Shown: piece after piece, positions 13,750 through 39,489 of the stretch
Layout of the letters: the number at the start of each line of letters is the position of its first letter
Position numbering within the stretch: the first letter of the stretch is position 1
Assembly (NCBI GenBank): GCA_002269645.1
Contig: NIVC01001519.1
Span: 210,999 to 274,998 of the forward strand
From: Macrostomum lignano
Lineage: Eukaryota
DNA length: 64,000 bases
Direction: 5' to 3'
Notes under the pieces: model-generated
The model's input: only the letters and a program-made list of their open reading frames with translations
The model's database searches: none
What the model was told of the DNA's origin: nothing
Position numbers and translations under genes: made by a program

Positions 13750-14780
13750 CACGGACCTAAACTTAAGACCTAAACTTAAAAAATCCAATATTATAAGACC
13801 TAAAAATTCATGACCTAAATATAACTAGACGTAAATTCCACTAGATCTAAATTTCACTGGACCTAAATTTCACTGGACCTAAATTTCACTAGACCTAAAT
13901 TCCACTGGACCTAAATTCCAGTAGATCTAAATTTCACTAGACCTAAATTCCAGTAGATCTAAATTTCACTAGACCTAAATTCCACTGGACCTAAATTCCA
14001 GTAGATCTAAATTTCACTAGACCTAAATTTCACTGAACCTAAATTCCAGTAGATCTAAATTTCACTAGACCTAAATTCCAGTAGATCTAAATTTCACTAG
14101 ACCTAAATTCCACTAGACCTAAATTCCAGTAGATCTAAATTTCACTAGACCTAAATTCCACTGGACCTAAATTCCAGTAGATCTAAATTTCACTAGACCT
14201 AAATTCCACTGGACCTAAATTCCAGTAGATCTAAATTTCACTAGACCTAAATTTCACTGAACCTAAATTCCAGTAGATCTAAATTTCACTAGACCTAAAT
14301 TCCAGTAGATCTAAATTTCACTAGACCTAAATTCCACTAGACCTAAATTCCAGTAGATCTAAATTTCACTAGACCTAAATTCCACTGGACCTAAATTCCA
14401 GTAGATCTAAATTTCACTAGACCTAAATTCCACTGGACCTAAATTCCAGTAGATCTAAATTTCACTAGACCTAAATTTCACTGAACCTAAATTCCAGTAG
14501 ATCTAAATTTCACTAGACCTAAATTCCAGTAGATCTAAATTTCACTAGACCTAAATTCCACTAGACCTAAATTCCAGTAGATCTAAATTTCACTAGACCT
14601 AAATTCCACTGGACCTAAATTCCAGTAGATCTAAATTTCACTGGACCTAAATTTCACTACACAAATTTCACTAGATGTAAATTCACTAGATATAAACTTT
14701 ACAAGACCTAAATTTCACTACAATTAAATTTTACTGGACCTAAATTTCAGTTGATGTGACCTAAATTTCAGTTGATGTAA
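13750..14780. repeat. 16-bp minisatellite with 224-bp higher-order repeat
   Basis: Unit acctaaatttcactag; rare variant cactgaacc at 14031, 14255 and 14479. Confidence 0.9.
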
Positions 14781-15290: not shown

Positions 15291-18200
15291 AGACGATTCT
15301 CTTGGTAGTTTAGAGACGATTCTCTTGGTAGTTTAGAGACGATTCTCTTGGTAGTTTAGAGACGATTCTAATTGTACTTTAGAGACGATTCTCTTGGTAG
15401 TTTAGAACGATTATCTTGGTAGTTTAGAGACGATTCTCTTGGTAGTTTAGAACGATTATCTTGGTAGTTTAGAGACGATTCTCTTGGTAGTTTAGAGACG
15501 ATTCTCTTGGTAGTTTAGAGACGATTATCTTGGTAGTTTAGAGACGATTATCTTGGTAGTTTAGAGACGATTCTAATTGTACTTTAGAGACGATTCTCTT
15601 GGTAGTTTAGAGACGATTATCTTGGTAGTTTAGAGACGATTATCTTGGTAGTTTAGAGACGATTCTAATTGTACTTTAGAGACGATTCTCTTGGTAGTTT
15701 AGAGACGATTATCTTGGTAGTTTAGAGACGATTCTAATTGTACTTTAGAGACGATTCTCTTGGTAGTTTAGAGACGATTATCTTGGTAGTTTAGAGACGA
15801 TTCTAATTGTACTTTAGAGACGATTCTCTTGGTAGTTTAGAGACGATTATCTTGGTAGTTTAGAGACGATTATCTTGGTAGTTTAGAGACGATTCTAATT
15901 GTACTTTAGAGACGATTATCTTGGTAGTTTAGAGACGATTATCTTGGTAGTTTAGAGACGATTATCTTGGTAGTTTAGAGACGATTCTAATTGTACTTTA
16001 GAGACGATTCTCTTGGTAGTTTAGAGACGATTATCTTGGTAGTTTAGAGACGATTCTAATTGTACTTTAGAGACGATTCTCTTGGTAGTTTAGAGACGAT
16101 TATCTTGGTAGTTTAGAGACGATTATCTTGGTAGTTTAGAGACGATTCTCTTGGTAGTTTAGAGACGATTCTCAGGGTAGTTTAGAGACGATTATCTTGG
16201 TAGTTTAGAGACGATTCTCTTGGTAGTTTAGAGACGATTCTCTTGGTAGTTTAGAGACGATTATCTTGGTAGTTTAGAGACGATTCTCTTGGTAGTTTAG
16301 AGACGATTCTCTTGGTAGTTTAGAGACGATTATCTTGGTAGTTTAGAGACGATTCTCTTGGTAGTTTAGAGACGATTCTCTTGGTAGTTTAGAGACGATT
16401 CTCTTGGTAGTTTAGAGACGATTCTCTTGGTAGTTTAGAGACGATTATCTTGGTAGTTTAGAGACGATTCTCTTGGTAGTTTAGAGACGATTCACAGGCT
16501 AGTTTAGAGACGATTCTCAGGGTAGTTTAGAGACGATTCTCTTGGTAGTTTAGAGACGATTCACAGGCTAGTTTAGAGACGATTCACAGGCTAGTTTAGA
16601 GACGATTATCTTGGTAGTTTAGAGACGATTCTCTTGGTAGTTTAGAGACGATTCTCAGGGTAGTTTAGAGACGATTCTCTTGGTAGTTTAGAGACGATTC
16701 ACAGGCTAGTTTAGAGACGATTATCTTGGTAGTTTAGAGACGATTCTCTTGGTAGTTTAGAGACGATTCTCAGGGTAGTTTAGAGACGATTCTCTTGGTA
16801 GTTTAGAGACGATTCACAGGCTAGTTTAGAGACGATTATCTTGGTAGTTTAGAGACGATTCACAGGCTAGTTTAGAGACGATTATCTTGGTAGTTTAGAG
16901 ACGATTCTCTTGGTAGTTTAGAGACGATTCTCAGGGTAGTTTAGAGACGATTCTCTTGGTAGTTTAGAGACGATTCACAGGCTAGTTTAGAGACGATTAT
17001 CTTGGTAGTTTAGAGACGATTCTCTTGGTAGTTTAGAGACGATTCTCAGGGTAGTTTAGAGACGATTCTCTTGGTAGTTTAGAGACGATTCACAGGCTAG
17101 TTTAGAGACGATTCTCTTGGTAGTTTAGAGACGATTCACAGGCTAGTTTAGAGACGATTCTCTTGGTAGTTTAGAGACGATTCACAGGCTAGTTTAGAGA
17201 CGATTCTCTTGGTAGTTTAGAGACGATTCACAGGCTAGTTTAGAGACGATTCACAGGCTAGTTTCGAGACGATTCACAGGCTAGTCTAGAGGCGATTCTC
17301 AGGGTAGTTTAGAGACGATTCTCAGGGTAGTTTAGAGACAATTATCTTGGTAGTTTAGAGACGATTCTCTTGGTAGTTTAGAGACGATTATCTTGGTAGT
17401 TTAGAGACGATTCTCTTGGTAGTTTAGAGACGATTCACAGGCTAGTTTAGAGACGATTCTCAGGGTAGTTTAGAGACGATTCTCTTGGTAGTTTAGAGAC
17501 GATTCACAGGCTAGTTAAGAGACGATTCACAGGCTAGTTTAGAGACGATTATCTTGGTAGTTTAGAGACGATTCTCTTGGTAGTTTAGAGACGATTCTCA
17601 GGGTAGTTTAGAGACGATTCTCTTGGTAGTTTAGAGACGATTCACAGGCTAGTTTAGAGACGATTATCTTGGTAGTTTAGAGACGATTCTCTTGGTAGTT
17701 TAGAGACGATTCTCAGGGTAGTTTAGAGACGATTCTCTTGGTAGTTTAGAGACGATTCACAGGCTAGTTTAGAGACGATTATCTTGGTAGTTTAGAGACG
17801 ATTCACAGGCTAGTTTAGAGACGATTATCTTGGTAGTTTAGAGACGATTCTCTTGGTAGTTTAGAGACGATTCTCAGGGTAGTTTAGAGACGATTCTCTT
17901 GGTAGTTTAGAGACGATTCACAGGCTAGTTTAGAGACGATTATCTTGGTAGTTTAGAGACGATTCTCTTGGTAGTTTAGAGACGATTCTCAGGGTAGTTT
18001 AGAGACGATTCTCTTGGTAGTTTAGAGACGATTCACAGGCTAGTTTAGAGACGATTCTCTTGGTAGTTTAGAGACGATTCACAGGCTAGTTTAGAGACGA
18101 TTCTCTTGGTAGTTTAGAGACGATTCACAGGCTAGTTTAGAGACGATTCTCTTGGTAGTTTAGAGACGATTCACAGGCTAGTTTAGAGACGATTCACAGG

Positions 18201-18340
18201 CTAGTTTCGAGACGATTCACAGGCTAGTCTAGAGGCGATTCTCAGGGTAGTTTAGAGACGATTTTCAGGGTAGTTTAGAGACAATTTTCAGGCTAGTCTA
18301 GAAGCGATTCTCAGGCTAGTCTAGAGACGATTATCAGGAT
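15291..18340. repeat. 23-bp minisatellite (3 kb)
   Basis: Unit gacgattctcttggtagtttaga with several variants. Confidence 0.95.
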
Positions 18341-18764
18341 AGTTTATTAATATCATAGAACTTTAAAATTTCAGTGTATATTGCATATGAGATTCCAAAA
18401 AGTCTCGATAAAAGCAAACATAGGCAAATAGCTAACTAATCTCCGACTTCGGAAGTTCTCCCTAAAAATAATAAATTTTATGGCTGTGGACTGCAATTTT
18501 TTCCATTATCCACGCTAGTCACTCCCTGTACTCAACCAAAGGGGAAACGCTAGACAGCCAGTGGCAGAATAAAGAGCAATTAAAGCAATTTTCCAGATCC
18601 ATACAAAAGATTTTGCTAGCGACTCTGAAAAGTTCTAGAACAAGCAATTTTTTTGGAAAAAAGCACGCCCTAGTCACATGGAATTCAAAGACACAGCATA
18701 GTTTAAAAACAGACAAAAAAGCTAAGAACTTTTTAAAACTTAAATTTTTTTAAAACTTGCTTAT

Positions 18765-19480: not shown

Positions 19481-19859
19481 AGGGCCTTTGCCATAGACCA
19501 GCTGTTTATTGTTGAATACAAATCTATAGTATCTGCAACAGACAATCGCAATGCGCCGTCAAGAACCCACTCGAGGAACCGAATTTTTAATTTTTAAGCT
19601 ATTTTAAACGCAATTCTCACCTCAATCCATATTTTATAGCCTGTTACACATCCCGACCCCCAATCGAGCGAATCTCAATGCTTTCATCTCAGAACCCCTT
19701 TTCACTTACTCTGTCTGTCTGTCTGTTGCACCTCAAGTAGTTTAATTCATTAGCAGAGTTCAAAGAAAGGGCGTAACTCTAAGATTTATTTAAAAATTAC
19801 TTTATATGAAGGCTCGATGTCTCAATGGCGGCGTTCTTTTGAGTTATAGACACTCGTCG

Positions 19860-20115
19860 TATGGACACTTACCCCTAAATTATGGACACTAACTCCTAAA
19901 TCATGGACACTTACCCCTAAATCATGGACACTAACTCCTAAATCATGGACACTAACTCCTAAATCATGGACACTAACTCCTAAATCACGGACACTTACCC
20001 CTAAATCATGGACACTAATTCTTAAATCATAAATACTAACTCCTAAATCATGGACACTAACTCCTAAATCATGGACAATTACCCCGGTGTTATAGACACC
20101 CATCCTATGGACACT
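19860..20115. repeat. 21-bp minisatellite
   Basis: Unit atggacactaactcctaaatc. Confidence 0.9.
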
Positions 20116-20254: not shown

Positions 20255-21957
20255 CCAGTCGGACTCGTCAGCTTCGCTTGGTCTAGCGGATGCGGAACCG
20301 TCAGCTGATGACGACTCATCGGGTGCTCCAACTTCAAATACAACATCAATGTCGCCATTCGGTTTGTTATTATCGGTGCCGAACGCACCATCACCGTTCA
20401 GTGACGATTGGAGACTGTCGGTTCTCGGTAGCGACTTTCTTGGCCGGCCCTTCTTGCCGGGTGTTCCGCCACTGAGCAACAAAGAAAAACAAGTTAAACA
20501 ACTGCTAAACTACAACTAAACAATTGAGGATTTACGAGGCTGGCCCAGCAACTGAGCATCTGGGAGGCTGGCCCAGCAACTGAGGATTTGGGAGGTTGGC
20601 TTAGGAACTGACACTCTGGGAGGCTGGCTTAGCAACTGAGCATCTGGGAGGCTGGCCCAGCAACTGACACTCTGGGAGGCTGGCCCAGCAACTGACACTC
20701 TGAGAGGCTGGCCCAGCAACTGACACTCTGGGAGGCTGGCCCAGCAACTGAGCATCTGGGAGGCTGGCCCAGCAACAGCAACTGAGCATCTGGGAGGCTG
20801 GCCCAGCAACTGAGGATCTGCATGGGAGGCTGGCCCAGCAACTGAGGATCTGGGAAGCTGGCTCAGCAACTGACGATCTGGGAGGCTGGCCCAGCAACTG
20901 AGGATCTGGGAAGCTGGCTTAGCAACTGACACTCTGGGAGGCTGGCCCAGCAACTGGGGATCTGGGAGGCTGGTGGCTCAGCAACTGACGATCTGGGAGG
21001 CTGGCCCAGCAACTGAGGATCTGCATGGGAGGCTGGCCCAGCAACTGAGGATCTGGGAGGCTGGTGGCTCAGCAACTGACGATCTGGGAGGCTGGCCCAG
21101 CAACTGAGGATCTGGGAAGCTGGCCCAGCAACTGAGCATCAGGAAGTGTGGAAACCATATCAAGATAACTTGTCGTGAATATATTCAATAAATAAGCAGC
21201 TTTGAATTAACCTTTTCTTCTTTTTCGACTCGTTAGCAGATTGGCTGGACGCCCCTTTTGAAGCGGGACGCTTCTTGGACTTGGGATTTCCGACTGCCGG
21301 GGGCGAATCGGCCGTGGCCGGCAGTGTCGGCGTGTCGGAGGCCGCACCGTCGATGACATCATCGAAGCAGTTCGGCTCTGTGCCTATCGCCGGCAACTCG
21401 GCGTCATCATCTATACTAGCAAACGCTTCTTCTTCTTTACGTTTCTGCTTTCGCTTGTTTTTCTTGTTCTTTTTCGAGTCTTTATTAAAATTATTATTGG
21501 AAGATTCGTCTTCGTCTGGGGAGGCGGAGACCGGCTCTCTGCTAGGCTTGGCCTTCTTAGCGGCGAGCACGCCGGCAAGGGTGTCGTCAAGCGTCGACAT
21601 CGACGACGAACGTCCCTCGTCGGCGACAACGTCGTCAGATGCACGTCGACGTTTGGACTTTTTCTTTTTCTTTTTGTTCGACTTCCGGACGGCGGCAACG
21701 TCGATATCAACGTCGGCGTCAAGACTATCGGCGTCGACATTGGCAGATTGCGATTCGCCCTGTTTAGTTGGCCTCTGTCGCCGACGGTTGTGACTTGATG
21801 ATTGAGGCGGCTGCGGTGGTAGCGGGCAGACTCGGATGACACGTGGCGGCGGCGGCGGCATCAGCTGTGGACTGGGCAGCTGGCCAACACAGTTGGCGGC
21901 ACTGGCGCTGTCAACAACAACAGAAGTCTGTAAAGCGCTACTCGAAGAACTGTCCAT
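20255..21957 (-). CDS. Probable N-terminal exons of the CHD gene (21957-21212 and 20471-20255), Lys/Ser/Asp-rich with an AT-hook-like motif
   Basis: ATG at 21957 in a GC-rich ORF. Donor at 21211 and acceptor before 20471 join in frame (AG+T=Ser, then GGTPGKKGRPRK). Same strand, upstream of the CHD core, but the link to exon 10064 is not phase-matched. Confidence 0.65.
20535..21140. repeat. 28-bp minisatellite
   Basis: Unit ggaggctggcccagcaactgagcatctg, filling intron 20472-21211. Confidence 0.95.
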
Positions 21958-24778
21958 GCCTGCCAGCAGATGACCTCTTGGTAGAGTTGGAAAGAAAAAT
22001 TGACTTTACAATAAGATTGCTTCGGCTAAAGAATTCACTTGATGTGACAAAAACCTGTTGATCAATTTTATTAACAAACTCATACTATCATGCTTTAATC
22101 AGAGTTGGCGAAGGTCTCATCCAAAATCTATGGATTGGCTGGTGCAGTCTGTGTGCTCATGAAAGGATATTATTTTAATGTCAAACATTTTTAACTTTTA
22201 TTTTATTATACAAATAATAGAAAAGCAAGCTAACTAAGGTAGACTAGGTATACTTGTATAATCAAAGATTATCTTTTAGGTCCTAAAATATGCTTGAATA
22301 TCTGCCCACTGATGGTATATTAGTATAGAAGAAACCAATCATCAAATATTGAAAGGATAGTAGGGTACATTTTATAACGACTTTGGACAAAATATGTATT
22401 GAAGAAACCTTATAGCATATATTCTTGATTTCCATAATGGGTCACAAAGTGACAAAGCTTTAATTTATCCTTCTTGGCTTTTATTAGAGGGGCTTTTATT
22501 ATAGGTATGAGTAAGGTTGATATTCAATTTAGATAAAAGTACTCTTGTTAAATTTATTTATAGATTCATTTGATATGTTTAAATTAGGGCCTATATAGAG
22601 TATCTAAAAAAGAAAAACTGTTTTTATTTTTGTTCACACAAAATTTTCAGTACTTTTAAATATATATCTATAATGTGTATTTAGCATATAAAATGAATAT
22701 CCACTTTGATAACTAAAACTTTGAAAAAAACCACATAGAAAAAATAGCAACTTCAATAAAAATTTTGTAGCAAATAATTTATAAGCTTTGTATTTAAAAA
22801 ATCTATAATAAAAATGTTACTAATGACAAAATTTATTAAATAAAGCATAATAGTATTATAGTATAATATATCTTATTAAAATACATGGTCAAAATGTGCT
22901 TAATAAATATCTTAACTATGCTATATCAATAGAGCAATTGGGAGCTCACAACTTTGGATTTTATATAAGGACTATGTAATAGTCTATTATTTGTAACAGT
23001 TATCCATGTATTATATGTCTATATATAAATATTAGTTTTTATATAAAAAATAGTTAACAATAACCATAGTTAAATCTATGCAAAAACTATAAAATAATGT
23101 TATAGTTGTTTTAAAAAGCAAAAAACTTTGATAACTATTTTGATAATTATTTTTATTATAAACATTTCTCCCAAACCTTATATACTAGACTATGTAACAA
23201 ATATACATGACAATCATGGCAAATAAACTAGACTACTTTTATTTGCAAATTGTTTCATTTATATTCTGACTCATAGTCATACAAACTTACTTAGAAATAT
23301 TTTAACAAGTTATTCACTTTGGACTAAATAGGGCTTGAAGTGCTAATAAAAATACTAAGAGAGAGAATTAGAGTTATACAAAAGAAGTTTAGAGAGTAAT
23401 TTTGTGAATTTCTAGTCTAGGCAATGTCTAAAGGACTAGAAAAATATATAAGACCACTTATAGGCTTTTTATATTACTAATTCCAGAACCAGAATCAGTT
23501 TGAAGTTTTACAGATTGTTTGTTCTGTTTTCAAAATCGGTTCTAGAACTGTAATCCAATTCTGGAATTTGGTTCAAGAAATTTTCTCAATCTATTGTTAT
23601 ATGTCTATAGTCTAGAAACAATAGGATGAATTTGAAATAAAATTTCAAAAAGAATACTATTTTGTCAATTTTAAATAATGTTTTTATCTTTTGAAAAGTA
23701 ATACATTTAGACAGAAATAGAATAAAAAGATTCTATGCTTTTCATTTTCCTACTGATTCTGGTTTTGGAGTCAGAATTATTTTGGTTCTAGACTCCCATA
23801 GTTTTTAGACTTCCCATACTTCTAAGACCAGAGTTATAAAGTACAATAGAGAAAGTGGATTTGGGACAACTTTGATAGCAGCCATAGTCCAGATCATGTT
23901 TAGTATATGCCAGAATGCTCTAAACCAATGCATGCCAGTGCCAAGTAGATGCATGCCAGTGCCAAGTAGATGCACACTAGCAAGCAGAGACTATGTACAC
24001 CAAACTAATATATTATAGAAAAACATATAATTTTTTACATTTAAAAATGACTTCAAAAAACTAAGTTTGCAATGTTTTTTGAAACTTTTGTAACATGCAA
24101 ATATATAATGTTTCTTTTTTGTAGAATAAAATTTACTTATCATTTAGCAATAAAAAAGTATGAATTATTGTTTTCACAACACCATGTCTTTTCACAAACT
24201 TTTGTCTCAATAAAACATGCCCAATATCATGCCAGGCCACATTCTATACTAGCTATTCTATACCATAGCATGCCAAGATACCACTTTTGGTGTGTAATAC
24301 CCAAATACACACCAATGCACGCTATAACTTTTAGGCCAAATCAAATGCACACTAGAATTTTCTGGCATGATATATGCTTTCTGGCATATAGGATAGAAGC
24401 TATTTTCTATGATAAAGTTATAATGCTTATTAGGAGGGGGGAGGGGGCTTATAGCTAATGGCTTAACAATGGGATTTAATGTAAAGATATCTAATATCAA
24501 TATATAATATAGGCTACTATGTTAGGGTATATATATTCTCCATAGTCAGGAAGATGGCCTTTGCCATAGAAAATTCTGATGCATACAAGGGGTTTAAGAT
24601 GCACTTGGCACATAATCATAGCCTATTGAAGAGGTCTATATTCTACAATGCTTTTGGACTCTTGGTACATAATCATAGTACACACAAAAAAGTTCCTCTC
24701 CTTCCTGATGCAGTGATGCACTTGGTACATAAAAACTAAAAAGTTTTATAAATAGTATATAAAATATGAAAAATAATA

Positions 24779-25675
24779 GGCAGTGCTTATCCCCATGGTA
24801 CCGTAGGAATAATTTCTGTCTTTTTCCAATGGTACCGTGGGAATAATTTTCTACTTATCCGCACGGCACACTGATGAGATAGCTGCCCTATCTTCTACAT
24901 ATGCTGTGGGAATAATTTTCTGCTTATCCGCATGGCATACTGATTAGATAGGGCGAATTGTTAAAGCAATGCAATTGCATATATCTATACAAACAAATTG
25001 CTAATTTACATGTCTAGTAGAAGTCTACAACAGAAGCGGCAATGCACTTTTCGGTATGATCTCGGGATTATACTTTGCTAAAAATTCAAATAATAAACAA
25101 TTACTAGAGCAATATACCTTAAATCATACATCATAAATACAAAAAAAGTTTTTTTGCATAAAAAGGCAATTAAATCTTTACTTCTATAAAACTAATGGCC
25201 AAGCAAAGTTATGTTATTATACTGCACTTAAACCGTAAGTACTAAACTAAATTATTCCCACAGCACCTGATTGCAGCGCATGGGCATTTTGGCGGACGGC
25301 GTCCGGCGCGGATCTAATACGGCGCGGCGCGGCGCGTACGGCGCGCGGCGATTAGTACGGCGTGGCGCGGTACTAATTAGATGCCGAGGCATTTAGGCTT
25401 GATAAGACAGTCATAGTTACTCCTGCCGTTTACCCAAAACTGCGTTAATTTTGCTTTAGAGTTTCTTTCATAGGTAAGTCATTTCACAGCGTGGCGCAGG
25501 TTGTGTAGGCGTCTGGCGTACTTAAGCCATGCGCTGCAATAGGGCCACAGCATATGTAAAAGATGAGGCAGCTATCTCGTCAGTGTGCCATGCGGATAAG
25601 TAGAAAATTATCCCCACGGTACCGTTGGAATAAGACAGAAATTATTTCTACGGTACCGTGGGAATAAGCACTGCC
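24779..25675. mobile_element. Non-autonomous TIR element, Mutator/MULE-like
   Basis: About 130-bp imperfect TIRs starting GGCAGTGCTTAT, flanked by the 9-bp direct repeat AAAATAATA (24770-24778 and 25676-25684). Confidence 0.8.
25266..25544. mobile_element. About 280-bp MITE (CCCTATTG-type ends) nested in the MULE right TIR, carrying an antisense 28S-derived cassette
   Basis: Ends cctgattgcagcgcatgg / ccatgcgctgcaataggg with a duplicated target CCACAGC(A). Removing it restores the MULE TIR sequence attcccacagcatatg. Confidence 0.75.
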
Positions 25676-27597
25676 AAAATAATAATATGACAATACTCAA
25701 TAGGTCTATTTAAGATAATTAGGCTTACTTATTTATAATAATATAAATATGTATGGCTATGAATGTCTATTTTTTAATTTTAACAATTTAAAAAGTATAA
25801 AAGCACCTTTTTTTGTAAGGTTTAGTTTAAAAAAAACGATTACTATAATTATAAGAATTATGATAGATTAGATTTTTAGTTTGAAGTTTGTTGTTATCAT
25901 TGTAATAAAAGGCTAAAAATGTTTTTTTATGACAAAGAAAAAGTAAGCCTAGGGCCTATTTTTCTTTTCTTTCTAGTTTATACTTAAAAGCCTTTTTACT
26001 GATTCATAATTTAAGACTTTAATATTGCTAACATACGCCTAAGCCCTAACTAAAGGCTAAAGTAAGCCAGTCTGCCAGTTGACGGTAGGCCTAAAGAAAG
26101 TTTAAGAGTTTACACGTGTGGCCGCATCCCGTGACCTATTAATTAAGCTCTACACCTGGACCTACACTTGTGACTCATCCTGGCATGCATCCCTGGCATG
26201 TCTGAAAGCCATGTAGTAAAATGTTTACTACAAACCAACCAAAGTGACTTTAAAGCATGTAATGTTGACGAGCTCACTTTTGATGCCTTTCCAAGAACAA
26301 TTTTAATTACAAGTTAAACTTACACGTTGTGATATATAACAAAGTTTGCATTCTCGTATTCTACAAAGAGAATATAATATCAAAATATTATTAATGTTAA
26401 AAAAAAAACTTTTTTAGCAATAAGTATATGAATTTTAGATTTAATTTTATCTTACTAAAAATCACTTCTAATTTGATTTTCTCTAATTTCGTTGAAAAAA
26501 CACCTGGAACGCGGGACGAGCAGCAGTGTGCTAAGTGCCGGTTTAGTTTGTCTGGCGTACTACTACCAATAGTTTTTTGACTTTACGTCTACAGTGTTCT
26601 TATATTTAGGCCCAACAATAAGACTTGATATAAATTGCGCACACTATATCAGTGGGTCATGATTTATGAGCAGCTTCAGTTGTAAGTAAATGCATCATGC
26701 ATGTCTGTGTGAAATGTTGTCACTTAAAGACTAAAGTTTATTTCAATCGCAATAGGCCTATGCTTATCGAAGTTATCAAATAATTTTCAGCTTTTCTAAA
26801 ATATCTGAATTTTTTGTTAGTTAGTCAAAAAAGCTTTACTTTTCTGTGCCATTATCTGTATGGATGGTAGGCCCCTAGGCCTATTCCATAGTCTAGATCA
26901 TGGCAGGTGTATGCCGGAATGAAAATTCATTCATTGATGAATGAATGAAAGTTACTCTGAAAAAGTAACTTTGGTTAAGTAACTTCTAGTTCCAAAGAAA
27001 GTAACTTCTGACACTTGTTCTAGTACCAGTACTTTAAAAAAAGTAGGCCTAACTTCTGGTACTTCCATTACTGGTCCTTTCTAATTTCAAACTGCCAATT
27101 AAAAAGTACTTAAACATGTCTTCATGAAAAAAACAAAAGCATGTATTAGTCTAGAGTAAAACATGATGTTATTTCTCAAATAAAGATGCTACATGTTTTA
27201 TTATTATTATCACATCCAAAATGTGAGTGAATAAAAAACACCTTTACAAAACAAAGATCAACAGTATATCAGGATGATTCACATAAAAAATTTAGAGGCT
27301 GATTTTCAAATATTGTTTCTGATTCTTCAGAGAAGTATATATGGAGATCATTTTTGTCCAATAGATATGTCACAATGATCAGTGTAGAATACTTTAGGCA
27401 ACTCTTAGTTTGTGTAAGCCATTCTCTTGTCACCCTACTATATATATTATTGTGCTATAGTCTTATAGCAGCTATATTTTTACAGTAGTATAAGTATACT
27501 TTTGTACTGCTGACTCATTTAGAATCAATAATAATATTCTAGGAGCTTTAGAAATGCCAGTTAATAGTTAACAAAAGAGATACTAGACAACAAATGG

Positions 27598-28843
27598 CCC
27601 CTATTGGAATAAGTGGTATTTTCGCGGACGGCGTCCGGCGCACTTTTTCTTTTTCCTCATAGTCATGGCGCATGGCGCGCTACGCGCGCCATGCGCCATG
27701 ACGCACAGCAGCTCACAGGTAAGATGCAAGGAGGACATCACGCGCTACATACAGCGCTGCTGAACAAGGATGAGAAGCATGCACAGGAGAAAGTCAGCAG
27801 CACGGTGGAAATTCAGCAAACTGTAAGTAAAACTTGTTTTTCTAATTTCTATAACTTTGATAATATTGCTATGGGCTATAGTATAGCATATCTCCTATCA
27901 TATGTATTGATTGCTGTGTCATCTAGAATATGCATGCAAGTTAATCGTAAAATTGGAAATTGTAGTTGAAAGATCGCAGCAGAAATGTTCTTTATTGCCT
28001 CATAAACATTATAACATAGTGCCAAATGCTAATTGCTCTTAATGTTCTCTTATAACGCAGTTGCAAGAAATAAAAAAGTAAACTAAATTCTATTAAAAGT
28101 CTCAACAAATTTTCTGCTTTGTTTAATTATCTTTTTGATTGGTTGCGCGTACATTTATTTATGCTGACATTTAAATGTGAAAATATTCTTCGAAACACCA
28201 TGCTAAATAGTTATCAGATTTGATAACCCGACCCAAGCCAAAGTGCTACAACTACTACTGAAAAAGTGTGTGGATAAGGCAAAGACAATTTTGTTTGTTC
28301 GTGAACTCTGTGTTGTTCATCACGGAGTTTCTTCATTTTGTATTAACCGATTAGCCAAATAGAAGTAAAGGGTTTCAGTGTTCGTAATTATTTTAAGTAC
28401 TCACTGATGCAATTGCCACACTATTTACATTATTTATTTTTCTTTGAATAGACCAACAATGTAACTTTGTAAGTCAAAAGACGAGTAGACTAAGAATTAA
28501 GAAATAGATACAACTACAACAGAAGGGGGCAGAAGTACAGTACAGAACAGAGTGCAGTAAAACACAAGTGCGGTAAAACACACAACTTTCTCTCAATCTC
28601 TTTAAATCTCTCAAAAACGAGTGATGCATCATCAGAATGAACATGATAGAGACTGGAGTCATGCACAATATCACCTAAACCTAGAGTGCTATGGCACCCT
28701 AGGATTTGAAGATTTGAATGACACATCGTCCATACCACCTTAGGATTTGAAGATTGTCATGACGCACCGTCCAGGCCACTTTATGATTGCCATGGCGCAC
28801 TAGATGCACTGTCCACAGTGTCTGAAAACTTATTCCAATAGGG
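27598..28843. mobile_element. 1.25-kb non-autonomous TIR element with CCCTATTGGAATAAG ends
   Basis: Perfect 15-bp TIRs; 7-bp direct repeat CAAATGG on both sides. Shares the subterminal GCGGACGGCGTCCGGCGC with the 25266 element. Confidence 0.75.
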
Positions 28844-29289
28844 CAAATGGCTGGAAATTGATAGATGGACCAAAGCCTCAAAGGAGTTAAAACTCAAAAC
28901 CTTCTTAAAATGTATAACTTATGTCATCTTACATGAACATTGAAAGGAAGAAATTGCAGCCTTCAAAAAATGTTCCACGAATCACAAGTGTAGTGTCCTA
29001 ATGTATTGCTAGTTATGCTTGTTAAAAAACTTGCAGAGTTATTAAACAAGGATTTTTATTGTTTTGAATGTGGCATGTTTCAGCAATAGTAGTACCAAAA
29101 TAATTTCTTCATTCTATGATTCTATATGATGCTTAAAATGTGCTTTAACTAAAAAAAAACCACCTGATCTAGGATCATCATTTTTACCTTTTTGTCATTA
29201 TACTACAAGTATTTTGGTGAAATTTTTGCACTTTTAGGAAATATTTAGGGCTAAATTGATTGTTTGGCACCTAAAATTTTATGTTCAAG

Positions 29290-29433
29290 TACTAGAAGAC
29301 CAGACTTATCAAAAAGTAACTTCCATTACTAAAGTCTGGCATTCTAAAAAACAACCAAAAAAAGTGCCACTTTAAAAAAAGTAACTTCCAGTTACTAAAA
29401 TTGCCAGAAGTACCAGAACTTTGCTCAACACTG
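29290..29433. mobile_element. Probable decayed hAT-like terminus with AGTAACT subterminal repeats; related repeats at about 26950-27090
   Basis: Repeated aaaagtaacttcc motifs ending in caacactg (reverse complement CAGTGTTG). The partner TIR was not located. Confidence 0.35.
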
Positions 29434-29758
29434 GTTCCCATTGTGTTTTTGTCTAGGCCTAGTTTTTTTACCATTTTATTGCATCTGCTACTTGAGATAA
29501 AGCCTAACCACACTGCCAATAATGATGGACCAAATGTGGATTTTTGTAAGTTTCTAAACCCAAATCCAAATCCAAATATCCAACTGTAAGCAAAAAGTAC
29601 GGTAAACACTGGGAGTAACTAAAAGACGTTTACTTTACAAAAATGTCTCATCATCTAATTAGTGATCTATTTATATGAATAATATAGACCTAATAAAATA
29701 ACTGATAAGATTCTATCTTAGGCTTATATATTATTATTATTAGGTCTATATCTATCAC

Positions 29759-30054
29759 CATACATGCGCAACCTCCAAAATTCAGTCAGCCATGCGACTT
29801 AGTTTTAACAAAAATGTGACGTAGTTTTTGGCCAAAAATGTGACTTACCTATGAAAGAAACCCTAAAGCAAAATTAAAGCAATTGTGGGTAAACAGTAGG
29901 AGTAACTATGACTGTCTTATGAGGGCTAAATGCCTCATCATCTAATTAGTATTACATCTGTATTCTTCGGGGTAGGCATTTTTGCGACTTACCTTGGTTG
30001 GCTGCCAAATCGTCGGCTGGATCGGCCGACTCGGCCAACTGTTGCGCATGTATG
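29759..30054. mobile_element. 296-bp hAT-type MITE carrying the 28S-derived cassette
   Basis: Perfect 14-bp TIR CATACATGCGCAAC; 8-bp TSD TCTATCAC (29751-29758 and 30055-30062). Confidence 0.85.
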
Positions 30055-32952
30055 TCTATCACTATCTAGTATCTAGCAAAACCAAATGATTCAAAAGTTT
30101 TATTTCTTTTACATTTGCATTTGTTTTGGTTTCTTGACTTGTTTTTTATGTGTGGAAGCTCATTTAAAATATTTGGAAACATTTCTAAGTTTGAAACATT
30201 TATAGCCATAGGCCTATTTCTTAAAAATTGAGACACTTTTTAGATTTGGATTCTGAATCCAAATGTTTGTATCCATCAGTAGCTTAAAATTTAATGCCAA
30301 TAGATTTTAACTGTACATAAAGGTAGGGACTCCAATGAGTGTACCATAAGCTATTAATTATATGAAAAATCGTAAAATAGGGTTTTTTATTAATGAAATT
30401 GCCAAGCATAAAAAACATTTTTAGCAAAAACAAAATATACATGTTAAAGAAGAGTTTATACTTGTTCTAATTAGATAAAGAAACAAAAATATATATACAT
30501 TATATGCCAAATAGTATCCCACTGAACTTTGTCTTTTTGTATACACTCATTTTGTTAAAATAATTGGTTTCTAACAAAAAAAACAAACTTTCAAAAGTCA
30601 CTTTTTGTGGCAACAAAATATAAATATTTAGTGATACAAGCAAATATATTGGGTAACTTTTTCTACATCTTGAAAAAATTTTTTTTCTCCCTATTTAGAC
30701 AGTATAAAAAAATAAAGTTGAATAAAAATTGTGCTTGCATTTCCAAAGCTTAGTAAAACCCAGATATGAATGCTATTCCAAAATGTGATTACATAAGAAA
30801 AAACTGCACATGTCTATCTATATCCACCAAAAAGTTATTGGGACCTATTTTTGCCTATCTCCTCAGTGTAAAATAGATTTGTTTTAAGTCAAAGAGCAGA
30901 ATTTTTCTAGCAAGAATTCCTAAGACTATTATTTTACTGTATTTAATAGAGGAACTTATAGGAATTCTTCATATCACTTTTTTTCTTTCTGCATATATCT
31001 GCTAAGGACCAGCAGCAATGTTTGCTTTTAGTAGCTATACTACTTATATGCTACTTATATTGATTTTTGAGTTTTCTTTGGTTTGTTACTAAACAGTAAA
31101 ATGTCATAGACTCTTAGATAACAATTTGACAAAGTTAGCAATCTCCTTTTTTGTGTCAGAAGCATGCAATCACAAGTTCTTTTTTTCAAAAAATATGTAC
31201 ACACACACTACTTACATGCTACTTATATAAAAAGTGGGTTGTTATAGCTTTTCTTTACCATAAAGAAGGACTTTTACCATTGCAAATTTGTCTATAGGTA
31301 ATATAATTCAAATAAATGTATGTTTCAGCTTATTGAGCTATAGCAATTGCAATCACAACAAGTGATTGATGCTTTGAATGCATGTAACCTTGGTCTGCAA
31401 TGCAAACTCTCATAAAGTGAACTGAATTTCATAAGAAATTGTGTTTATTCAATTTGTATATTTAATAAGCAACTTAAAAATATACAATTTTAAGTACAAT
31501 ATATTTTAAATACTTCTTTACACTTTCGTGTAGATATGAAAGTTCATTAGCAGCTTTACTCATACACAATATAAAATTTTACAATAGGAGGCTCAATACA
31601 AAAATATACAATACATTAGTCTATCAACAATCATTTATCTATATATTTTGCATTTAAAAAGCAAAGCAGACAATATATATTGTGTATGTAATGAAAATAA
31701 GCATTAAATATAAAACATGCTAACTTCAGTCTTTAGTTGCAGCTAATCAACAAGCAAAAATATTGGGAAAAATGAAAAAAGCTTTTGAATAAACCAAAGT
31801 ACACAATGAAAATTTTCATATGTTTCTCAATAAATAAAACAAATCAAACTTGATATATGTTCATAAGTCTAAAAATTATAATCATTCAAAGTTGAAAAAT
31901 GTGCAAATTTAAGATATGCTATTAAGTTCCAGTAGCAAAAAAGTCACCAAATTGGGTGAATTTTTTAACCCTTGCCAATGTATAGGCAAAAGAGGTATAA
32001 TAACATATACTTTTATGTGTTGTAAAGCAAACAAAAAAAAAGATTTCAGAAAAAGCAAATAACTTTTAAATAGTAGCCATTTGAAATTTTCATTTTGCTC
32101 TATTTTTGATGTGCCCTTTTCACTTTTAAAAAATTCAAATGCAAACCCCAAAAAAGATGCATTAAAAAGAATAAAAACAATTTGCTAATCTTATTTAAAA
32201 CTGATTGATCTTTAAAATGATACCAGACTCAACATTATAAGTTGAATAGCAAAAAAGATATGACAACAAAAAGTGAAAAATTTTGTTTTCATACTTCCAA
32301 TGGCAACAACCTATAATGTATTTTTCCTATCTAAAAAAATTGTAACTGGACAAAAAATGCTATAACTTTTTTATTATTTAACCAGATCTTGGTACTAACC
32401 CAGATCTAAAAATATAGCAAAGAAACTGCATTTGTTTCAACCTCTATAATAAAGATCAATTGACTTTTAGCTCCTAGAGAGCTACTAAAGTTTGGTATAA
32501 TTAGGCTTAATTACTATTCATTATATAATTTTTTTATTTTGGTCGCTATAGTATCATGACATAATATGCCTGTAGTCTTTTTATGTATGCATTTAGTAGG
32601 CCTAGTTTGTTTTTTTCAGTTATTTTATTAAATAAGTATTAATTTGCTTTGGTATCATAAAGTAATTTTTTATATTTTAATTATAAGTGTATAGTATTTA
32701 ATAACTCTGTTTTTTCTAGTAAATGTAAATATTAAGTAATCACAACTCAATTAATAGCAAACTATTAATTTGTACTTCTATGTGATTTTTAGCTTTTGCA
32801 TTATTTACATGCTTAAGAATTATTGTATGTAATAATGAATACTTTGTAGCTTTAGTAATATTTTGTAGTTCATAATGGTATAATTTAGCCTTTTTCCATT
32901 TCAATGGCTGGCAAACAAGCTGGTTCAATTAATACTTTAATTAATGTTTTAG

Positions 32953-35900
32953 ATACTCAACCACAGAGAAGTTTATAATTCAGCCAGTTGATGGTAATGA
33001 AATTCTGGTTATTGACAAACAGACAACCGATGTTTCTGTCACTGGTGAGTTGCACTTTGTTAGAATTGCAAAAATTCTACACATTGAATGTAGATATTTT
33101 ATTCACAAAAATGCTAGTAGTCTACTTTTAGTAGCAAAGATAAGTATTTATAAATTTTTAAAGGCCTAAAAAGCAATAAAAATTGATCTGTTATTTTCAA
33201 TTTTGATTTAATTCAAATTTTATTGGATTTTTTGTCTCCCTGTGTCTCCTTGTCTTTTCTCTGTGTCTCCCTGTCTTTTCTAGGTGTCTCCCTGTCTTTT
33301 CTCTGTGTCTCCCTGTCTTTTCTCTGTGTCTCCCTGTCTTTTCTCTGTGTGTCCCTGTCTTTTCTCTGTGTGTCCCTGTCCCTGTGTCCATGTGTAGGAA
33401 TGGGGTGATGGGTTAGTGGGACATCGACCCTTGGCGGTGCAGTAGGCGGTGCAATTTCAAAATTTAATTTTGCTACTTTCAGTAGTTAAACTTTTCTAGC
33501 TGTTTTTTTAACACCCCTCCTTGTAAAGCTGATCGGTCCATTGTGCCAACAACAACTGGCACTCAGCCAACTACAATCTACGGCCTGTGGGGCATCATCC
33601 GTCTGCCTCCTCCAGCCGGGCCTCAGCTGTTAACTATTCGATCGCGAGCTCTAGTTGGCAATCTGTGGGGTCACAATGTCTGGCGCGTCGATGCCACCGA
33701 TGTGCTGCCGTTTCAACGCCTCTCAGCCAGCCTGTCGCCACAGCAGGCCTCCGACGCGGCCGCCTATCTAGCCATGGTGCAGGAGGTTCTCAAAACTCCC
33801 AATTATTATTTCTCCTATACGTTAGACGTGACTCACTCCGCTCAACGTCTAGCCGACACCAGTCCGGAGTTTCGCAGCCTGGCCTTAGCCGAACGTGCCG
33901 ATGAACGATTTGTTTGGAATCACCAGTTGCTAGGCGATTTAAGAGGCTTTTCCCGTTTTGCTTTGCCAATTATGCACGGATTTGTCAGCATTTGGAGTTC
34001 GGTTTATCGGGTAGGTCTGGGGCGTTGTTGATCTATGAAATATTCTGTTTGTATTTCTGCTCCTTTATAGCAAATCTCACTCCCATTCTTCCCCATCCCC
34101 CTAGTGATCTTTAATCCCACTCCCATTCTTCCCCATCCTCCTAGTGATCTTTAATCCCACTCCCCATTCTTCCCCATCCTCCTAGTGATCTTTAATCCCA
34201 CTCCCATTCTTCCTCATCCTCCTAGTGATCTTTAATCCCACTCCCATTCTTCCCCAACCCCCTAATGATCTTTAATCCCACTACCATTCTTCCCCATCCT
34301 CCTAGTGATCTTTAATCCCACTCCCCATTCTTCCCCATCCTCCTATTGATCTTTAATCCCACTCCCATTATTCCCCATCCTCCTAGTGATCTTTAATCCC
34401 ACTACCATTCTTCCCCATCCTCCTAGAGATCTTTAATCCCACTCCCATTCTTCCTCATCCTCCTAGTGATCATTAATCCCACTCCCATTCTTCCCCAACC
34501 CCCTAGTGATCATTAATCCCACTCCCTATTCTTCCCCATCCTCGCAGTGATCCCTAATCCCACTCTCATCTCTTTACCACGTTTCCAGTGATCCCCTATG
34601 TCTCTTTATCTCATTCATACCCCGATTATCCAATTATCCCTAATCCCATTCCCCGCGTCATAAATCCCATTCCCCAATCATCACAGGACCGGGCATTCGA
34701 CTACGCCCTGATCAGCCGGCGCTCCCGATTCCGGGCCGGGGTTCGATTCTACATGCGCGGCGCCGACGAGAATGGCTGCGTGGCCAATTTTGTAGAGACA
34801 GAGCAGCTGGTACAGGCGCAGGGTCAAAAGTTCAGCTTTGTGGTGACTCGCGGCTCCGTGCCGCTCAGCTGGTCGCAGTATCCCAATTTAAAGTACAAGC
34901 CGAAACCGGACCTGGCTAAGGAGGCCCATCTGCAGACGGCCGTGTTCTCCGCTCACTTCAATGATCAGGTTAGGAAATTTTATCATTTTTATTCAGTTAA
35001 AGCCAAGTCCTTGTGTGACGCCAAATCCAATTTAGTAGAATTCCAGCTGTTTCATGGCGCCAAATCCAATACAGTAGAATTTCAGGTGTTTTATGGCGCC
35101 AAATCCAATACAGTAAAATTCCAGGTGTTTTTGGCGCCAACTCCAATACAGTAGAATTCCAGGTGTTTTATAGTGCCAAATCCAATCCAGTAAAATTCCA
35201 ACTGTTTTGGCGCCAAATACAATCTACTAGAATTATAGTTGTTTTTGGCGCCAACTTCAATCCAGTAGAATTCCAGCTGTTTTATGGCACCAAACCCAAT
35301 CTACTAGAATTATAGTTGTTTTTGGCGCCAACTTCAATCCATTAGAATTCCAGCTGTTTTTTTGGCGCCAAATCCAATCTACTAGAATTATAGTTATTTT
35401 TGGCGCCAACTTCAAGCCAGTAGAATTCCAGCTGTTTTTAGCGCCAAATCCAGTCCAGTGGAATTCCAGCTGTTTTCGGCGCCAACTCCAATTCAGTAGA
35501 ATTCCAGCTGTTTTATGGCGCCAAATCCAGTCCAGTAGAAACCCATAAAACTCCTACCCCACATCGCAGGTGTTCACTCACAGGTACGGCAAGCAAATAG
35601 TAATCAATTTGCTGGACACCAAAGGCGCCGAACGCGAGCTGTGCGCCAGTTTCAGCCGCAGCTGCTCTCAGCCGGAGCTGCTCGGCGCCGCCGAGGTTCG
35701 CTACGAGCATTTCGACTTTCACAAGGAGTGCAGCCGGATGCGCTGGGACCGGCTGTCTCTGCTCATGGACCGGACCGAGCCTGATCATCAGGCTATGGGA
35801 TATTTTCATATTGCAGCCGATGGTCAGTCAGCCTCCGATCATTATGCCTCATCTAATTATTCTCCCATTGTACTCTCAACCCGCCTCGTCTTCCTCTCTT

Positions 35901-37318
35901 CACCCGCCTTGCTTTACCCTCTCTTCACCCGCCTTGCTTTACCCTCTCTTCACCCGCCTCTCCTTACCCTCTCCTCACCCGCCTTACCTTACCCTCTCTT
36001 CACCCACCTTGCTTTACCCTCTCTTTACCCGCCTCTCCTTACCCTCCCCTCCTCACCCGCCTTACCTTACCCTCTCTTCACCCACCTTGCTTTACCCTAT
36101 CTTTACCCGCCTCGCCTCACACTCTCTTCACCCGCCTCTTCTAACCAGCTCCTCATCCGCCTTGCTTTACCCTCTTTCCTCGTATTGTCTCACCCTCTCT
36201 TCACCCACCTCGCCTCACCATCTTCACCCGCCTCGCCTTACCCTTTCCTCACCTGCCTTATCTAGCCCCTATCTAACTCTCCTCGTCGCTTCATCCGTCG
36301 CCTCATCACTTGGCAGGCTCGGTGGCTCTCCAGCAGAAGAGTGTATTCCGGGTGAACTGCATAGATTGCCTAGACCGCACCAATGTAGTGCAAGGCATGC
36401 TGGCTAGGCGGGCACTGCTAGACCAATTCCGTTCGCTTGGCTGGCTAGAAGACGGCGCCAATGGCCGCCTATCCGACGATGTTGAACGATTTCTAAAGAA
36501 CGTCTGGGCCGACAATGCAGACACGCTGGCCCAGCAGTACACGGGCACTGGCGCTTTGAAGGCCGATTTCACGCGCACTGGCAAGCGCACTAAATACGGG
36601 GCACTGATGGACGGCTACAACAGCATGGTCAGATATGCTAAGAATAATTTCACCGATGGATTTCGTCAGGACGCTATCGATTTGTTTTTGGGCAATTATC
36701 AACCGGAACCGGGTGCGGCTAGTCCCTTTGAAGTTGCCGCCGAGTCGGCTAGCTTGATGAAGAGAGCCCTACCAGCTGCCGCTTTGATTGGCCTGGCTCT
36801 GCTAGTGATGCGTATTCTGCTACCAGCTGGTGAGTGACAGATTGAAATGCTGTTCTTTAAGGTGGGGTTCTTCTGGTAAACTTTTACTGGGATTCCTTGA
36901 ATGATTTCCAAGATTATTGAATTAGGGATCATTGAAAAAAAATCTATAAAAGGGATATTCTCAGAATGATCTGTTAGTAAGATTCTCACAATAACTCGAA
37001 AGTGTGATTTTTAAAATAATCCACTGTGGGATTCTTGGAATGACCCGAAAGTGGGATTATTCTCGGCGGGCAATTCGTCTGCGGGAAACTCTCATGGACC
37101 CTGTTTTTGTGATGTTTTTTTTAAACTCCATTGGATTTTCACCCCCCCTTCCTTCTCTCCCTCTCCACACAGAGCGCTGGACAGACACGGCACTGCACTG
37201 CCTGATATTCATCGGCCTGATAGCGCTGTCGCTGTTCGGCATTGTTCGCCATGGCGACGAGTTCGTGGACCGGCCTCGCCTGGCCCTGAAAATTGACCGG
37301 CAAAAGAAGCGACAATGA
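32953..37318 (+). CDS. SACM1L: SAC1 phosphoinositide phosphatase (first coding exon not found)
   Basis: Exons 32953-33044, 33529-34010, 34687-34968, 35570-35822, 36317-36829 and 37173-37318 have consistent phases. Motifs: ERFVWN, LISRRS..RAGVRF..RG, NFVETEQ, RGSVPL.WSQ, catalytic [16 protein letters not shown], and two C-terminal hydrophobic segments. Confidence 0.95.
33230..33395. repeat. 21-bp tandem repeat (SAC1 intron)
   Basis: Unit ctgtgtctccctgtcttttct. Confidence 0.9.
34070..34565. repeat. 40-bp minisatellite (SAC1 intron)
   Basis: Unit cccactcccattcttccccatcctcctagtgatctttaat. Confidence 0.95.
35010..35545. repeat. About 39-bp minisatellite (SAC1 intron)
   Basis: Unit approximately ggcgccaaatccaatccagtagaattccagctgttttt. 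Confidence 0.9.
35880..36300. repeat. Pyrimidine-rich imperfect tandem repeat (SAC1 intron)
   Basis: Recurrent ctcttcacccgccttgctttaccct. Confidence 0.85.
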
Positions 37319-38370: not shown

Positions 38371-39290
38371 TCCTCAGGGTTCTGTGTCTCCCTAGCAACT
38401 GCTGAGTTCTTCCTCAGGGTTCTGTGTCTCCCTAGCAACTGCTGAGTTCTTCCTCAGGGTTCTGTGTCTCCCTAGCAACTCCTGAGTTCTTCCTCAGGGT
38501 TCTGTGTCTCCCTAGCAACTCCTGAGTTCTTCCTCGGGGTTCTGTGTCTCCCTAGCAACTGCTAAGTTCTTCCTCAGGGTTCTGTGTCTCCCTAGCAACT
38601 CCTGAGTTCTTCCTCAGGGTTCTGTGTCTCCCTAGTAACTCATGAGTCCTCGGGGTTGTGTTTCCCCAACAACTCATGAGCTCGTCAGAATCGTTTCCCC
38701 AGCAACGCATGAGCTTCTCAGGATTGTTTCCCCAGCAACTCATGAGCTCCTCAGGATTGTTTCCCCAGCAACTCATGAGCTCCTCAGGATTGTTTCCCCA
38801 GCAACTCATGAGCTCCTCAGGATTGTTTCCCCAGCAACTCATGAGCTCCTCAGGATTGTTTCCCCAGCAACTCATGAGCTCCTCAGGATTGTTTCCCCAG
38901 CAACTCATGAGATCCTCAGGATTGTTTCCCCAGCAACTCATGAGCTCCTCAGGATTGTTTCCCCAGCAACCCGGCCATACTCCTCAGGATTGTTTCCCCA
39001 GCAACTCATCAGCTCCTCAGGATTGTTTCCCCAGCAACCCATGAGCTCCTCAGGATTGTTTCCCCAGCAACTCATGAGCTCCTCAGGATTGTTTCCCCAG
39101 CAACTCATCAGCTCCTCAGGATTGTTTCCCCAGCAACCCATACTCCTCAGGATTGTTTCCCCAGCAACTCATCAGCTCCTCAGGATTGTTTCCCCAGCAA
39201 CCCATGAGCTCCTCAGGATTGTTTCCCCAGCAACTCATGAGCTCCTCAGGATTGTTTCCCCAGCAACTCATCAGCTCCTCAGCATTGTGT
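38371..39290. repeat. Adjacent 40-bp (38371-38640) and 33-bp (38640-39290) minisatellites upstream of KPTN
   Basis: Units ttcctcagggttctgtgtctccctagcaactcctgagttc and ctcaggattgtttccccagcaactcatgagctc. Confidence 0.95.
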
Positions 39291-39489
39291 ATCCGTAGCT
39301 CCTCTTGACGCATCTTTATTTTCATATCACGCAGTTGATTCTATCTAGTACCAGCGCTGTTGTGTATCAATAGCTGCTTTATTGTTTTTTTCTAGTCGTG
39401 CTTCTTGTAAAATAAAGTCAAGTCGCTTTAAAATTGTACCCGCAGCGGTAGCGGAAATCTCTTAACAGCGCCCCAGCAGCGCCAGCGCC

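Follow-up and report, generated by a model that had tools for sequence, protein, structure and literature searches.

Two MITEs (miniature inverted-repeat transposable elements) with unrelated ends were found to carry the same 111-nt internal cassette in the flatworm Macrostomum lignano, and 64 nt of this cassette are, to judge from sequence comparison, derived from the 28S ribosomal RNA gene (28S rDNA). Both elements lie in the final 64 kb of contig NIVC01001519.1 (assembly GCA_002269645.1), a stretch referred to below as the window, whose proteins belong to clusters with members bearing BOX15_Mlig locus tags and assigned to this species. MITE1 is located 1.1 kb upstream of a SAC1 phosphoinositide phosphatase gene, and MITE2 within a SAC1 intron that also houses a 28S-like unit of a loose type and, in addition, a relative of MITE1 measuring 1245 bp (the 1245-bp element). 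The window was analyzed together with ~264 kb of additional M. lignano DNA from contigs encoding known proteins, giving a total of ~328 kb, to which the copy counts refer. This sample includes the homeologous contig NIVC01001485.1 (locus L127), which is collinear with the window at 81-95% identity over most aligned blocks; comparison of the two provides clean presence/absence calls for insertions. The cassette is present in four elements, three of the MITE2 type and one MITE1, and the four copies share a common descent. The coordinates of all features are collected in Table 1.

The two cassettes of the window form a single inverted match of 111 nt with 90% identity, detected by a repeat finder as well as by BLAST, and a global alignment showed MITE1 and MITE2 to be unalike outside this block. 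Both copies had been noticed in a preliminary description made from the letters of the window alone, which placed the minus-strand copy at 25371-25480 and set the start of the plus-strand copy at 29826, about 15 nt too far to the left of the position found here (29841). It had also counted 54 identities to 28S over the last 64 nt, and the same count (54/64) was obtained for both copies. The 28S reference was verified by a 145-nt stretch that at least 120 eukaryotic rDNA contigs from metagenomes contain without mismatch; on one of them (L005) it sits inside a full-length Rfam LSU_rRNA_eukarya match. When the window and 105 kb of other M. lignano DNA were compared with these 120 rDNA contigs by BLAST, the cassettes were the sole matches (E-values of 1.3e-13 for copy A and 1.1e-14 for copy B), so that the only rDNA-like DNA of the window in this comparison is internal to the MITEs. 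Local alignment of the cassette to 28S gave a z of 29 against shuffled sequences. The 28S fragment spans helix 69 (H69) to helix 71 and extends from -36 to +28 around the nick site of the R2 retrotransposons.

The ~47 nt upstream of the 64-nt core were tested alone and are not significantly 28S-like, as 25 to 767 of 2000 shuffles reached the observed score; the earlier judgement that this part is at most weakly rDNA-like was thus a fair one. A local alignment running into the upstream part had suggested that all 111 nt are collinear with 28S, an interpretation that was dropped once this part, taken separately, had proved no better than its shuffles. All that can safely be stated is a 64-nt 28S core joined to ~47 nt of unclear origin. 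Rfam searches yielded neither a large-subunit (LSU) rRNA match nor any other credible match for the window at the gathering threshold or for positions 24500-30500 at E-values up to 10. Since the covariance model misses a decayed fragment of 64 nt, the 28S relationship was tested by BLAST, alignment and nhmmer. A cassette-specific 22-mer found nothing in a metagenome scan.

Both carriers are clean insertions of mobile elements with different terminal inverted repeats (TIRs) and 8-bp target-site duplications (TSDs), as had been proposed. The TIRs of MITE1 are 18 bp long, match at 16 of the 18 positions and carry the terminal motif CCCTATTG; its TSD, CCACAGCA, is found at 25258-25265 and 25545-25552, and that of MITE2, TCTATCAC, at 29751-29758 and 30055-30062. 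Stop codons interrupt all six frames of both elements, which contain no open reading frames (ORFs). MITE1 is nested in a foldback element, the arms of which are 92% complementary and which contains an internal 34-nt repeat with GGTACC palindromes. The entire foldback is missing from the homeolog, where its empty site is present, and is flanked by the TSD AAATAATA. Removal of MITE1 and one copy of its TSD restores an unbroken right arm of the foldback, which agrees with the reverse-complemented left arm at 132 of 147 positions, an internal empty-site proof that confirms the insertion of MITE1. The empty site of the window MITE2 itself was not seen, since the enclosing 1.36-kb block is missing from the homeolog.

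The 1245-bp element shares with MITE1 the terminal CCCTATTG and a 27-nt subterminal block (GGTATTTTCGCGGACGGCGTCCGGCGC); it does not contain the cassette, and its empty site is present in the homeolog. A perfect 19-bp hairpin (GTCATGGCGCATGGCGCGC / GCGCGCCATGCGCCATGAC) was observed within it at window positions 27662-27702, with a weak Rfam match to mir-4847 (E 0.008) that falls far under the gathering score.

The cassette is not confined to the window. Two MITE2-type copies, named c1 and c2, were found on the homeologous contig, and both carry the cassette at sites non-orthologous to those of the window copies. Copy c1 has MITE2 ends, an 8-bp TSD and the cassette, and the corresponding site of the window, near 23186, is empty; the MITE2 ends and TSD therefore recur beyond the element from which they were first described. 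None of the three outcomes that the preliminary description had named as refuting it was observed: the cassette also occurs on a second contig, its similarity to 28S is significant, and the MITE2 boundaries recur. In total, two full copies and one partial copy of MITE2 were counted in the sampled DNA, against one copy of MITE1 and its 1245-bp relative. The MITE2 family transposed after the divergence of the homeologs. Its three elements seen here all contain the cassette, which is thus a standing component of the family. The empty sites of the homeologs date these insertions to after the genome duplication of M. lignano. A direct repeat, GACTTACCT, brackets the cassette and ~35 nt in all MITE2-type copies (window positions 29843-29851 and 29986-29994, likewise in c1 and c2), and possibly records the initial capture.

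In pairwise comparison the four cassettes reach 80-88% identity, and all four show the same departures from 28S, namely GGCGGG to GGCAGG, CTCTC to CTGTC, and TTAAGGTAGCC to TTATTAAGGCT. The last of these would most simply be read as a gain of TTA and a loss of TAG around the R2 nick; the sites that vary among the MITE copies are not clustered in the nick region. The non-rDNA upstream part is also common to the four cassettes, with 31 of 35 positions identical between the copies of the two MITE families. Because the departures from 28S are the same in all four copies, they represent one cassette lineage and not two captures, as the preliminary description had supposed. Independent capture of the same 28S segment by two MITE families could be imagined, as rDNA is multicopy and an easy template and the common part is short. 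Yet the copies have at least three substitutions, an identical rearranged centre and the ~47 nt of non-rDNA in common; this alternative is already contradicted by the alignments and is given almost no credence.

The earlier suggestion of an exchange between families stands as to the single lineage of the cassette and can be refined, in that the MITE2 family is the standing carrier and MITE1 the probable single recipient. MITE2 arms are found on three of the cassette carriers and MITE1 arms on one. Moreover, the motif at the cassette's 5' edge in MITE1, TGACTTACCT, looks native to MITE2, since each of the three MITE2-type copies has it a second time on the 3' side of the cassette. The sequences on either side of the block in MITE1, GCGCCACGCTGT and GCGCCACGCCGT, were not read as a TSD because the MITE1 arm contains further copies of a similar (T)ACGGCGYGGCGC motif; a 12-nt direct repeat around the block, GCGCCACGCYGT, may likewise be two copies of a subterminal motif. 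The two elements are 4 kb apart in the window, a spacing that suits template switching during repair.

These observations are consistent with a sequence of events in which the 64-nt piece of 28S, together with ~47 nt, would have joined the interior of MITE2, a non-autonomous cut-and-paste family, and would then have travelled as a passive passenger of its transposition. At a later time, 111 nt from the interior of some MITE2 element would have been copied into the middle of the unrelated MITE1, with its CCCTATTG ends. The likeliest route would be template switching or filler synthesis in the repair of a double-strand break or gap, as proposed for Pack-TIRs and chimeric MITEs, and the 28S fragment would be a decaying pseudogene piece devoid of rRNA function. 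We consider this account as a whole, with a single capture in the MITE2 lineage, passive spread, later copying into MITE1 and no function, to be probable.

Several points weigh against it. The census covers ~328 kb of a genome of roughly 760 Mb, and the 28S sequence used for comparison is the universal core from metagenomic rDNA rather than the 28S of M. lignano itself. All four cassette-bearing MITEs lie in one homeologous gene neighbourhood, and no copy of either MITE was found in ~240 kb of unlinked M. lignano loci. Neither a cassette-free MITE2 nor a second MITE1 was seen in the sampled DNA, and the order of events therefore rests on parsimony. The absence of function, as read from the sequence, is probable rather than certain. 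Finally, since units with the same 28S boundaries exist outside MITEs (see below), it is a possibility that the MITE captured such a loose unit rather than rDNA itself.

Both elements display the features of MITEs, with TIRs, 8-bp TSDs, empty sites (for MITE2, that of its relative c1), a small size (279 and 296 bp) and no coding capacity. The label of hAT-type that MITE2 had received in the preliminary description was not supported. The TSD consensus of hAT elements is nTnnnnAn, and none of the four 8-bp TSDs (TCTATCAC, AGACTATA, CCACAGCA and CAAATGGC) fits it at both positions. No autonomous partner, that is, no hAT-coding element with the ends of the MITEs, was detected in the ~328 kb. The sole hAT-coding element found, on the homeologous contig, has different ends, although in so small a sample a matching partner may lie elsewhere in the genome. 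The label has the length of the TSD as its one basis; P, Merlin or MULE may be alternative superfamilies for TSDs of ~8 bp. That hAT element is missing from the window at ~25824; in one UniProt gene model (P0404) it is joined to SAC1.

With their unrelated ends around a common internal block, and lying 4 kb apart, the present elements resemble MITEs of chimeric or recombinant make-up and those derivatives of Ac/Ds- or P-type elements in which filler DNA accompanies an internal deletion; such an arrangement is what template switching during repair would give. The other close parallel is provided by Pack-TIRs, since an internal segment homologous to a host gene is flanked here by TIRs and a TSD. 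Pack-TIRs arising by gap filling or fork switching have been documented in animals (PMC8277862). Pack-TIRs and Pack-MULEs share with the present case the TIR element with TSDs, the internal piece of a host gene, multicopy spread by transposition and a proposed origin by gap filling or template switching (PMC8277862); the differences are that the cargo here comes from an rRNA gene instead of a protein-coding gene and was passed on to a second, unrelated TIR family. By analogy, Pack-TIR capture and chimeric MITEs would be the closest known kinds, and the case fits a Pack-TIR capture with rRNA-gene cargo and secondary transfer. The capture is real, yet it is of an ordinary kind and shows no sign of function. 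It offers a clear animal example of a cut-and-paste MITE family with a fragment of an rRNA gene and of an internal block moving between unrelated MITE families, and it carries a warning for annotation, as 28S-like matches in flatworm introns or untranslated regions (UTRs) can be transposon cargo.

Other mobile elements with a recognisable rDNA-derived segment are of a different nature. A 2024 review of transposable elements and rDNA lists as rDNA-derived parts the 5S-headed short interspersed elements (SINEs) and terminal-repeat retrotransposons in miniature (TRIMs), SINE28 and the intergenic-spacer repeats of Pokey (PMC10946416, Table 2); its table does not contain a cut-and-paste MITE carrying the H69-H71 core of 28S. 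In fish, some R2 families have 28S-derived segments in their 3' UTR (PMC5035012). All of these are either retroposons in which the rDNA-derived segment serves promotion or targeting, or elements resident in rDNA, in contrast to the MITEs described here, which lie in genes and spacers and whose 28S piece is without evident role. The structure of a SINE is absent from the MITEs, which have TIRs and fixed 8-bp TSDs and no A-tail. The fragment is centred on the 28S site (TTAAGG/TAGC) targeted by R2, Pokey and I-PpoI, and it is mainly there that the family consensus differs from 28S (+TTA, -TAG). Unlike these systems, no copy was found inserted in rDNA, all MITE flanks being intron or intergenic DNA; the MITEs contain no reverse transcriptase, endonuclease or piggyBac ORF, their TSDs are of 8 bp and not TTAA, and the 28S piece is internal and contiguous and does not form paired flanks.

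A third, degenerate 28S-like unit, missed in the preliminary description, is located 95 bp upstream of MITE2 (z = 14.6 against shuffles; nhmmer E 0.006). Further units of this loose type, outside any MITE, were found at three other loci (L124, L125 and L135) in the ~264 kb of additional DNA, where a fourth locus (L123) has a 28S-like unit of the reverse pattern described below. The array at L125 lies 94-350 nt 3' of the stop codon of a TIR-domain gene and is kept, at 98.5% identity, in the paralogs L132 (12661-12912) and L133 (9733-9984). In the loose units a 22-nt arm resembling GGGTAAACGGCGGGAGTAACTA and an 18-nt arm resembling CCTCGTCATCTAATTAGT match 28S at 80-100% identity, free of indels, and the centre (-14 to +10) is replaced by 8-30 nt. 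With a 166-nt 28S query, all nhmmer matches began at query positions 45-63 and finished at 120-132, although 28S conservation continues downstream of these ends; with the full LSU as reference, all matches of at least 34 bits fell within positions 2503-2568. These units are a side finding that is at present unexplained. A satellite with a ~62-nt unit containing CACCCACTGATAGAACAGGTAG, which resembles CACCCACTAATAGGGAACGTGAG of 28S, was observed next to the L124 unit (19520-19740); its kinship with 28S was rejected, as in this much sequence a match of a 13-mer is no more than chance would give.

The loose units suggest another origin of the cassette, in which the primary entity would be a dispersed unit of ~65 nt, covering 28S from -36 to +28 and arising from R2-type biology, and an ancestor of MITE2 would have taken up one of them. 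Candidate routes are duplications at junctions, the retro-copying of 28S/R2 co-transcripts whose start is a ribozyme cut as far as 36 nt upstream, or the scarring of ectopic 28S copies at the nick site by the R2 endonuclease. The occurrence of loose units at four loci and in the L125 paralogs speaks for such an origin, as do the arms kept without indels around a replaced centre and the fixed limits of the nhmmer and full-LSU matches, which are identical to those within which the MITE cassette matches 28S significantly. Published footprints of R2 on its upstream side, at -37 to -25 and -21 to -15 (PMC11204384), fall together with the left arm (-36 to -15), as does the most distant cut by an R2 ribozyme reported for 28S, at -36 (PMC3774820). 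Duplications of 22-24 bp of 28S have been reported at R2 junctions (PMC3774820), and flatworms possess R2 as well as non-site-specific R2 (PMC5035012). However, the sampled DNA showed neither an R2 element nor a reverse transcriptase, and poly(A) and TSDs are both absent from the loose units. The contrast between arms and centre is in part an ascertainment effect, because the loose units were found through their arms, and the 28S-like unit of L123 shows the reverse pattern, with the centre kept and the arms replaced. In the MITE cassette, too, the centre is still recognisable and has small indels only. We therefore regard an R2-linked origin of the cassette as unlikely.

A wider proposal is less likely again. 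According to it, M. lignano would harbour thousands of ~65-nt units (-36 to +28) produced by a recurrent R2-linked process, with the footprint arms kept and the cleavage region replaced, some of them lying as antisense 28S in 3' UTRs, and the MITE cassette would be one that gained the mobility of a DNA transposon. The process may involve 28S/R2 transcripts delimited by the ribozyme, or ectopic targets scarred by the endonuclease. The side finding could be of greater importance if it holds genome-wide, since dispersed units whose boundaries are fixed at the R2 target would amount to a record, in the sequence, of R2 acting beyond rDNA, or to UTR elements of a new, rRNA-complementary class.

Some of the evidence bears on whether the cassette and the loose units have a function. 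They might serve as bipartite antisense-28S sites in 3' UTRs, as targets or sources of rRNA-derived small RNAs, or as decoys for rDNA nucleases, with the MITEs spreading the module. At two of the four loose-unit loci (L125 and L135) the units are indeed located 40-350 nt past a stop codon and oriented such that antisense 28S would enter the mRNA, the lengths of the arms fall within the size range of small RNAs, and a regulatory role has been proposed for complementarity between rRNA and 3' UTRs (PMC4911919). However, the cassettes and units have no Rfam family and no conserved fold, their folding being no better than that of shuffled sequences (z from -0.9 to +1.0). The remaining two loose units, like two of the MITE copies, lie within introns in the sense orientation, and the cassette copies are 12-20% diverged, similar to the MITE arms. 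A comparison of the L125 array with its paralogs was uninformative to negative with respect to constraint on the arms, as 3-4 of the 7 differences between these 98.5% identical sequences fall in the arms, about the share expected without constraint. The functional reading is accordingly considered highly improbable, and the proposals that the cassette acts as a source of small RNAs, in homing or as a decoy are unsupported.

Reading the cassette as functional LSU rRNA finds no basis either, with no Rfam LSU match for the window or for 24500-30500 and no intact H69 stem, the stem being broken in every copy because of the change from CTCTC to CTGTC. Two more specific RNA readings were rejected. 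A hairpin or miRNA-like structure was discarded in view of inconsistent folds, with the z values given above, and an interpretation of the loose units as snoRNAs of the C/D-box or H/ACA type in view of the lack of D boxes after the antisense arms and of any Rfam match.

Table 1. Elements, cassettes, 28S-like units and host gene in the window and at other sampled M. lignano loci
Feature	Location (window positions unless a locus is named)	Strand	Description
Foldback element	24779-25675		~140-nt inverted arms, ends GGCAGTGCTTATCC; MITE1 in right arm
MITE1	25266-25544	-	279-bp non-autonomous TIR element, ends CCTGATTGCAGCGCATGG / CCCTATTGCAGCGCATGG
Cassette copy A	25371-25481	-	111 nt; 28S-like core 25372-25435
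SAC1 phosphoinositide phosphatase gene	26659-37318	+	PAA66959.1, 596 aa
1245-bp element	27599-28843	+	non-autonomous MITE1 relative; perfect 16-bp TIRs CCCTATTGGAATAAGT, TSD CAAATGGC
1.36-kb block	29330-30692		contains loose unit and MITE2; missing from homeolog; no clear TSD
Loose 28S-like unit	29600-29665	+	arms GGTAAACACTGGGAGTAACTA and TCTCATCATCTAATTAGTGA kept, centre replaced
MITE2	29759-30054	+	296-bp non-autonomous TIR element, 14-bp TIRs CATACATGCGCAAC; in SAC1 intron
Cassette copy B	29841-29951	+	111 nt; 28S-like core 29887-29950
MITE2 relative c1	L127 2508-2802		full length, 84% identity, TIRs, 8-bp TSD AGACTATA
MITE2-like copy c2	L127 ~13575-13850		cassette and 3' arm match at 13646-13793
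hAT element	L127 5290-9139		3.9 kb, ends CAGTGGCGTATCC / CAGGCGCGTAACC, TSD TTTACAGT; Dimer_Tnp_hAT protein (P0405)
28S-like unit	L123 ~19965-20030	-	centre kept (17/18), right arm apparently inverted in place
Loose unit	L124 19454-19520	+	~25 nt inside an intron
Loose-unit array	L125 17610-17858		four in tandem, 8-30 nt variable centres; antisense to TIR-domain gene
Loose unit	L135 2295-2360	-	40 nt past spermine synthase stop codon, antisense to gene

Elsewhere in the window, a look-up of the ORF at 21163-21957 returned no recorded gene. Overlapping ORFs on both strands at 38552-39325 stem from a short tandem repeat (SPATHELLRIV / MSCWGNNPEEL) and most likely represent a minisatellite rather than a gene. 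An element of the mariner type occupies 54097-55396 and contains an ORF (54261-55184) with HTH_48 and Transposase_1 domains, for which a homolog search found no window-identical copies; the element is missing from the homeologous locus L122, which is indicative of a lineage-specific insertion. It is followed by a long tandem array with a period of 28 bp (56228-60000), which is present in both homeologs and was found in L122 at 16448-18342.

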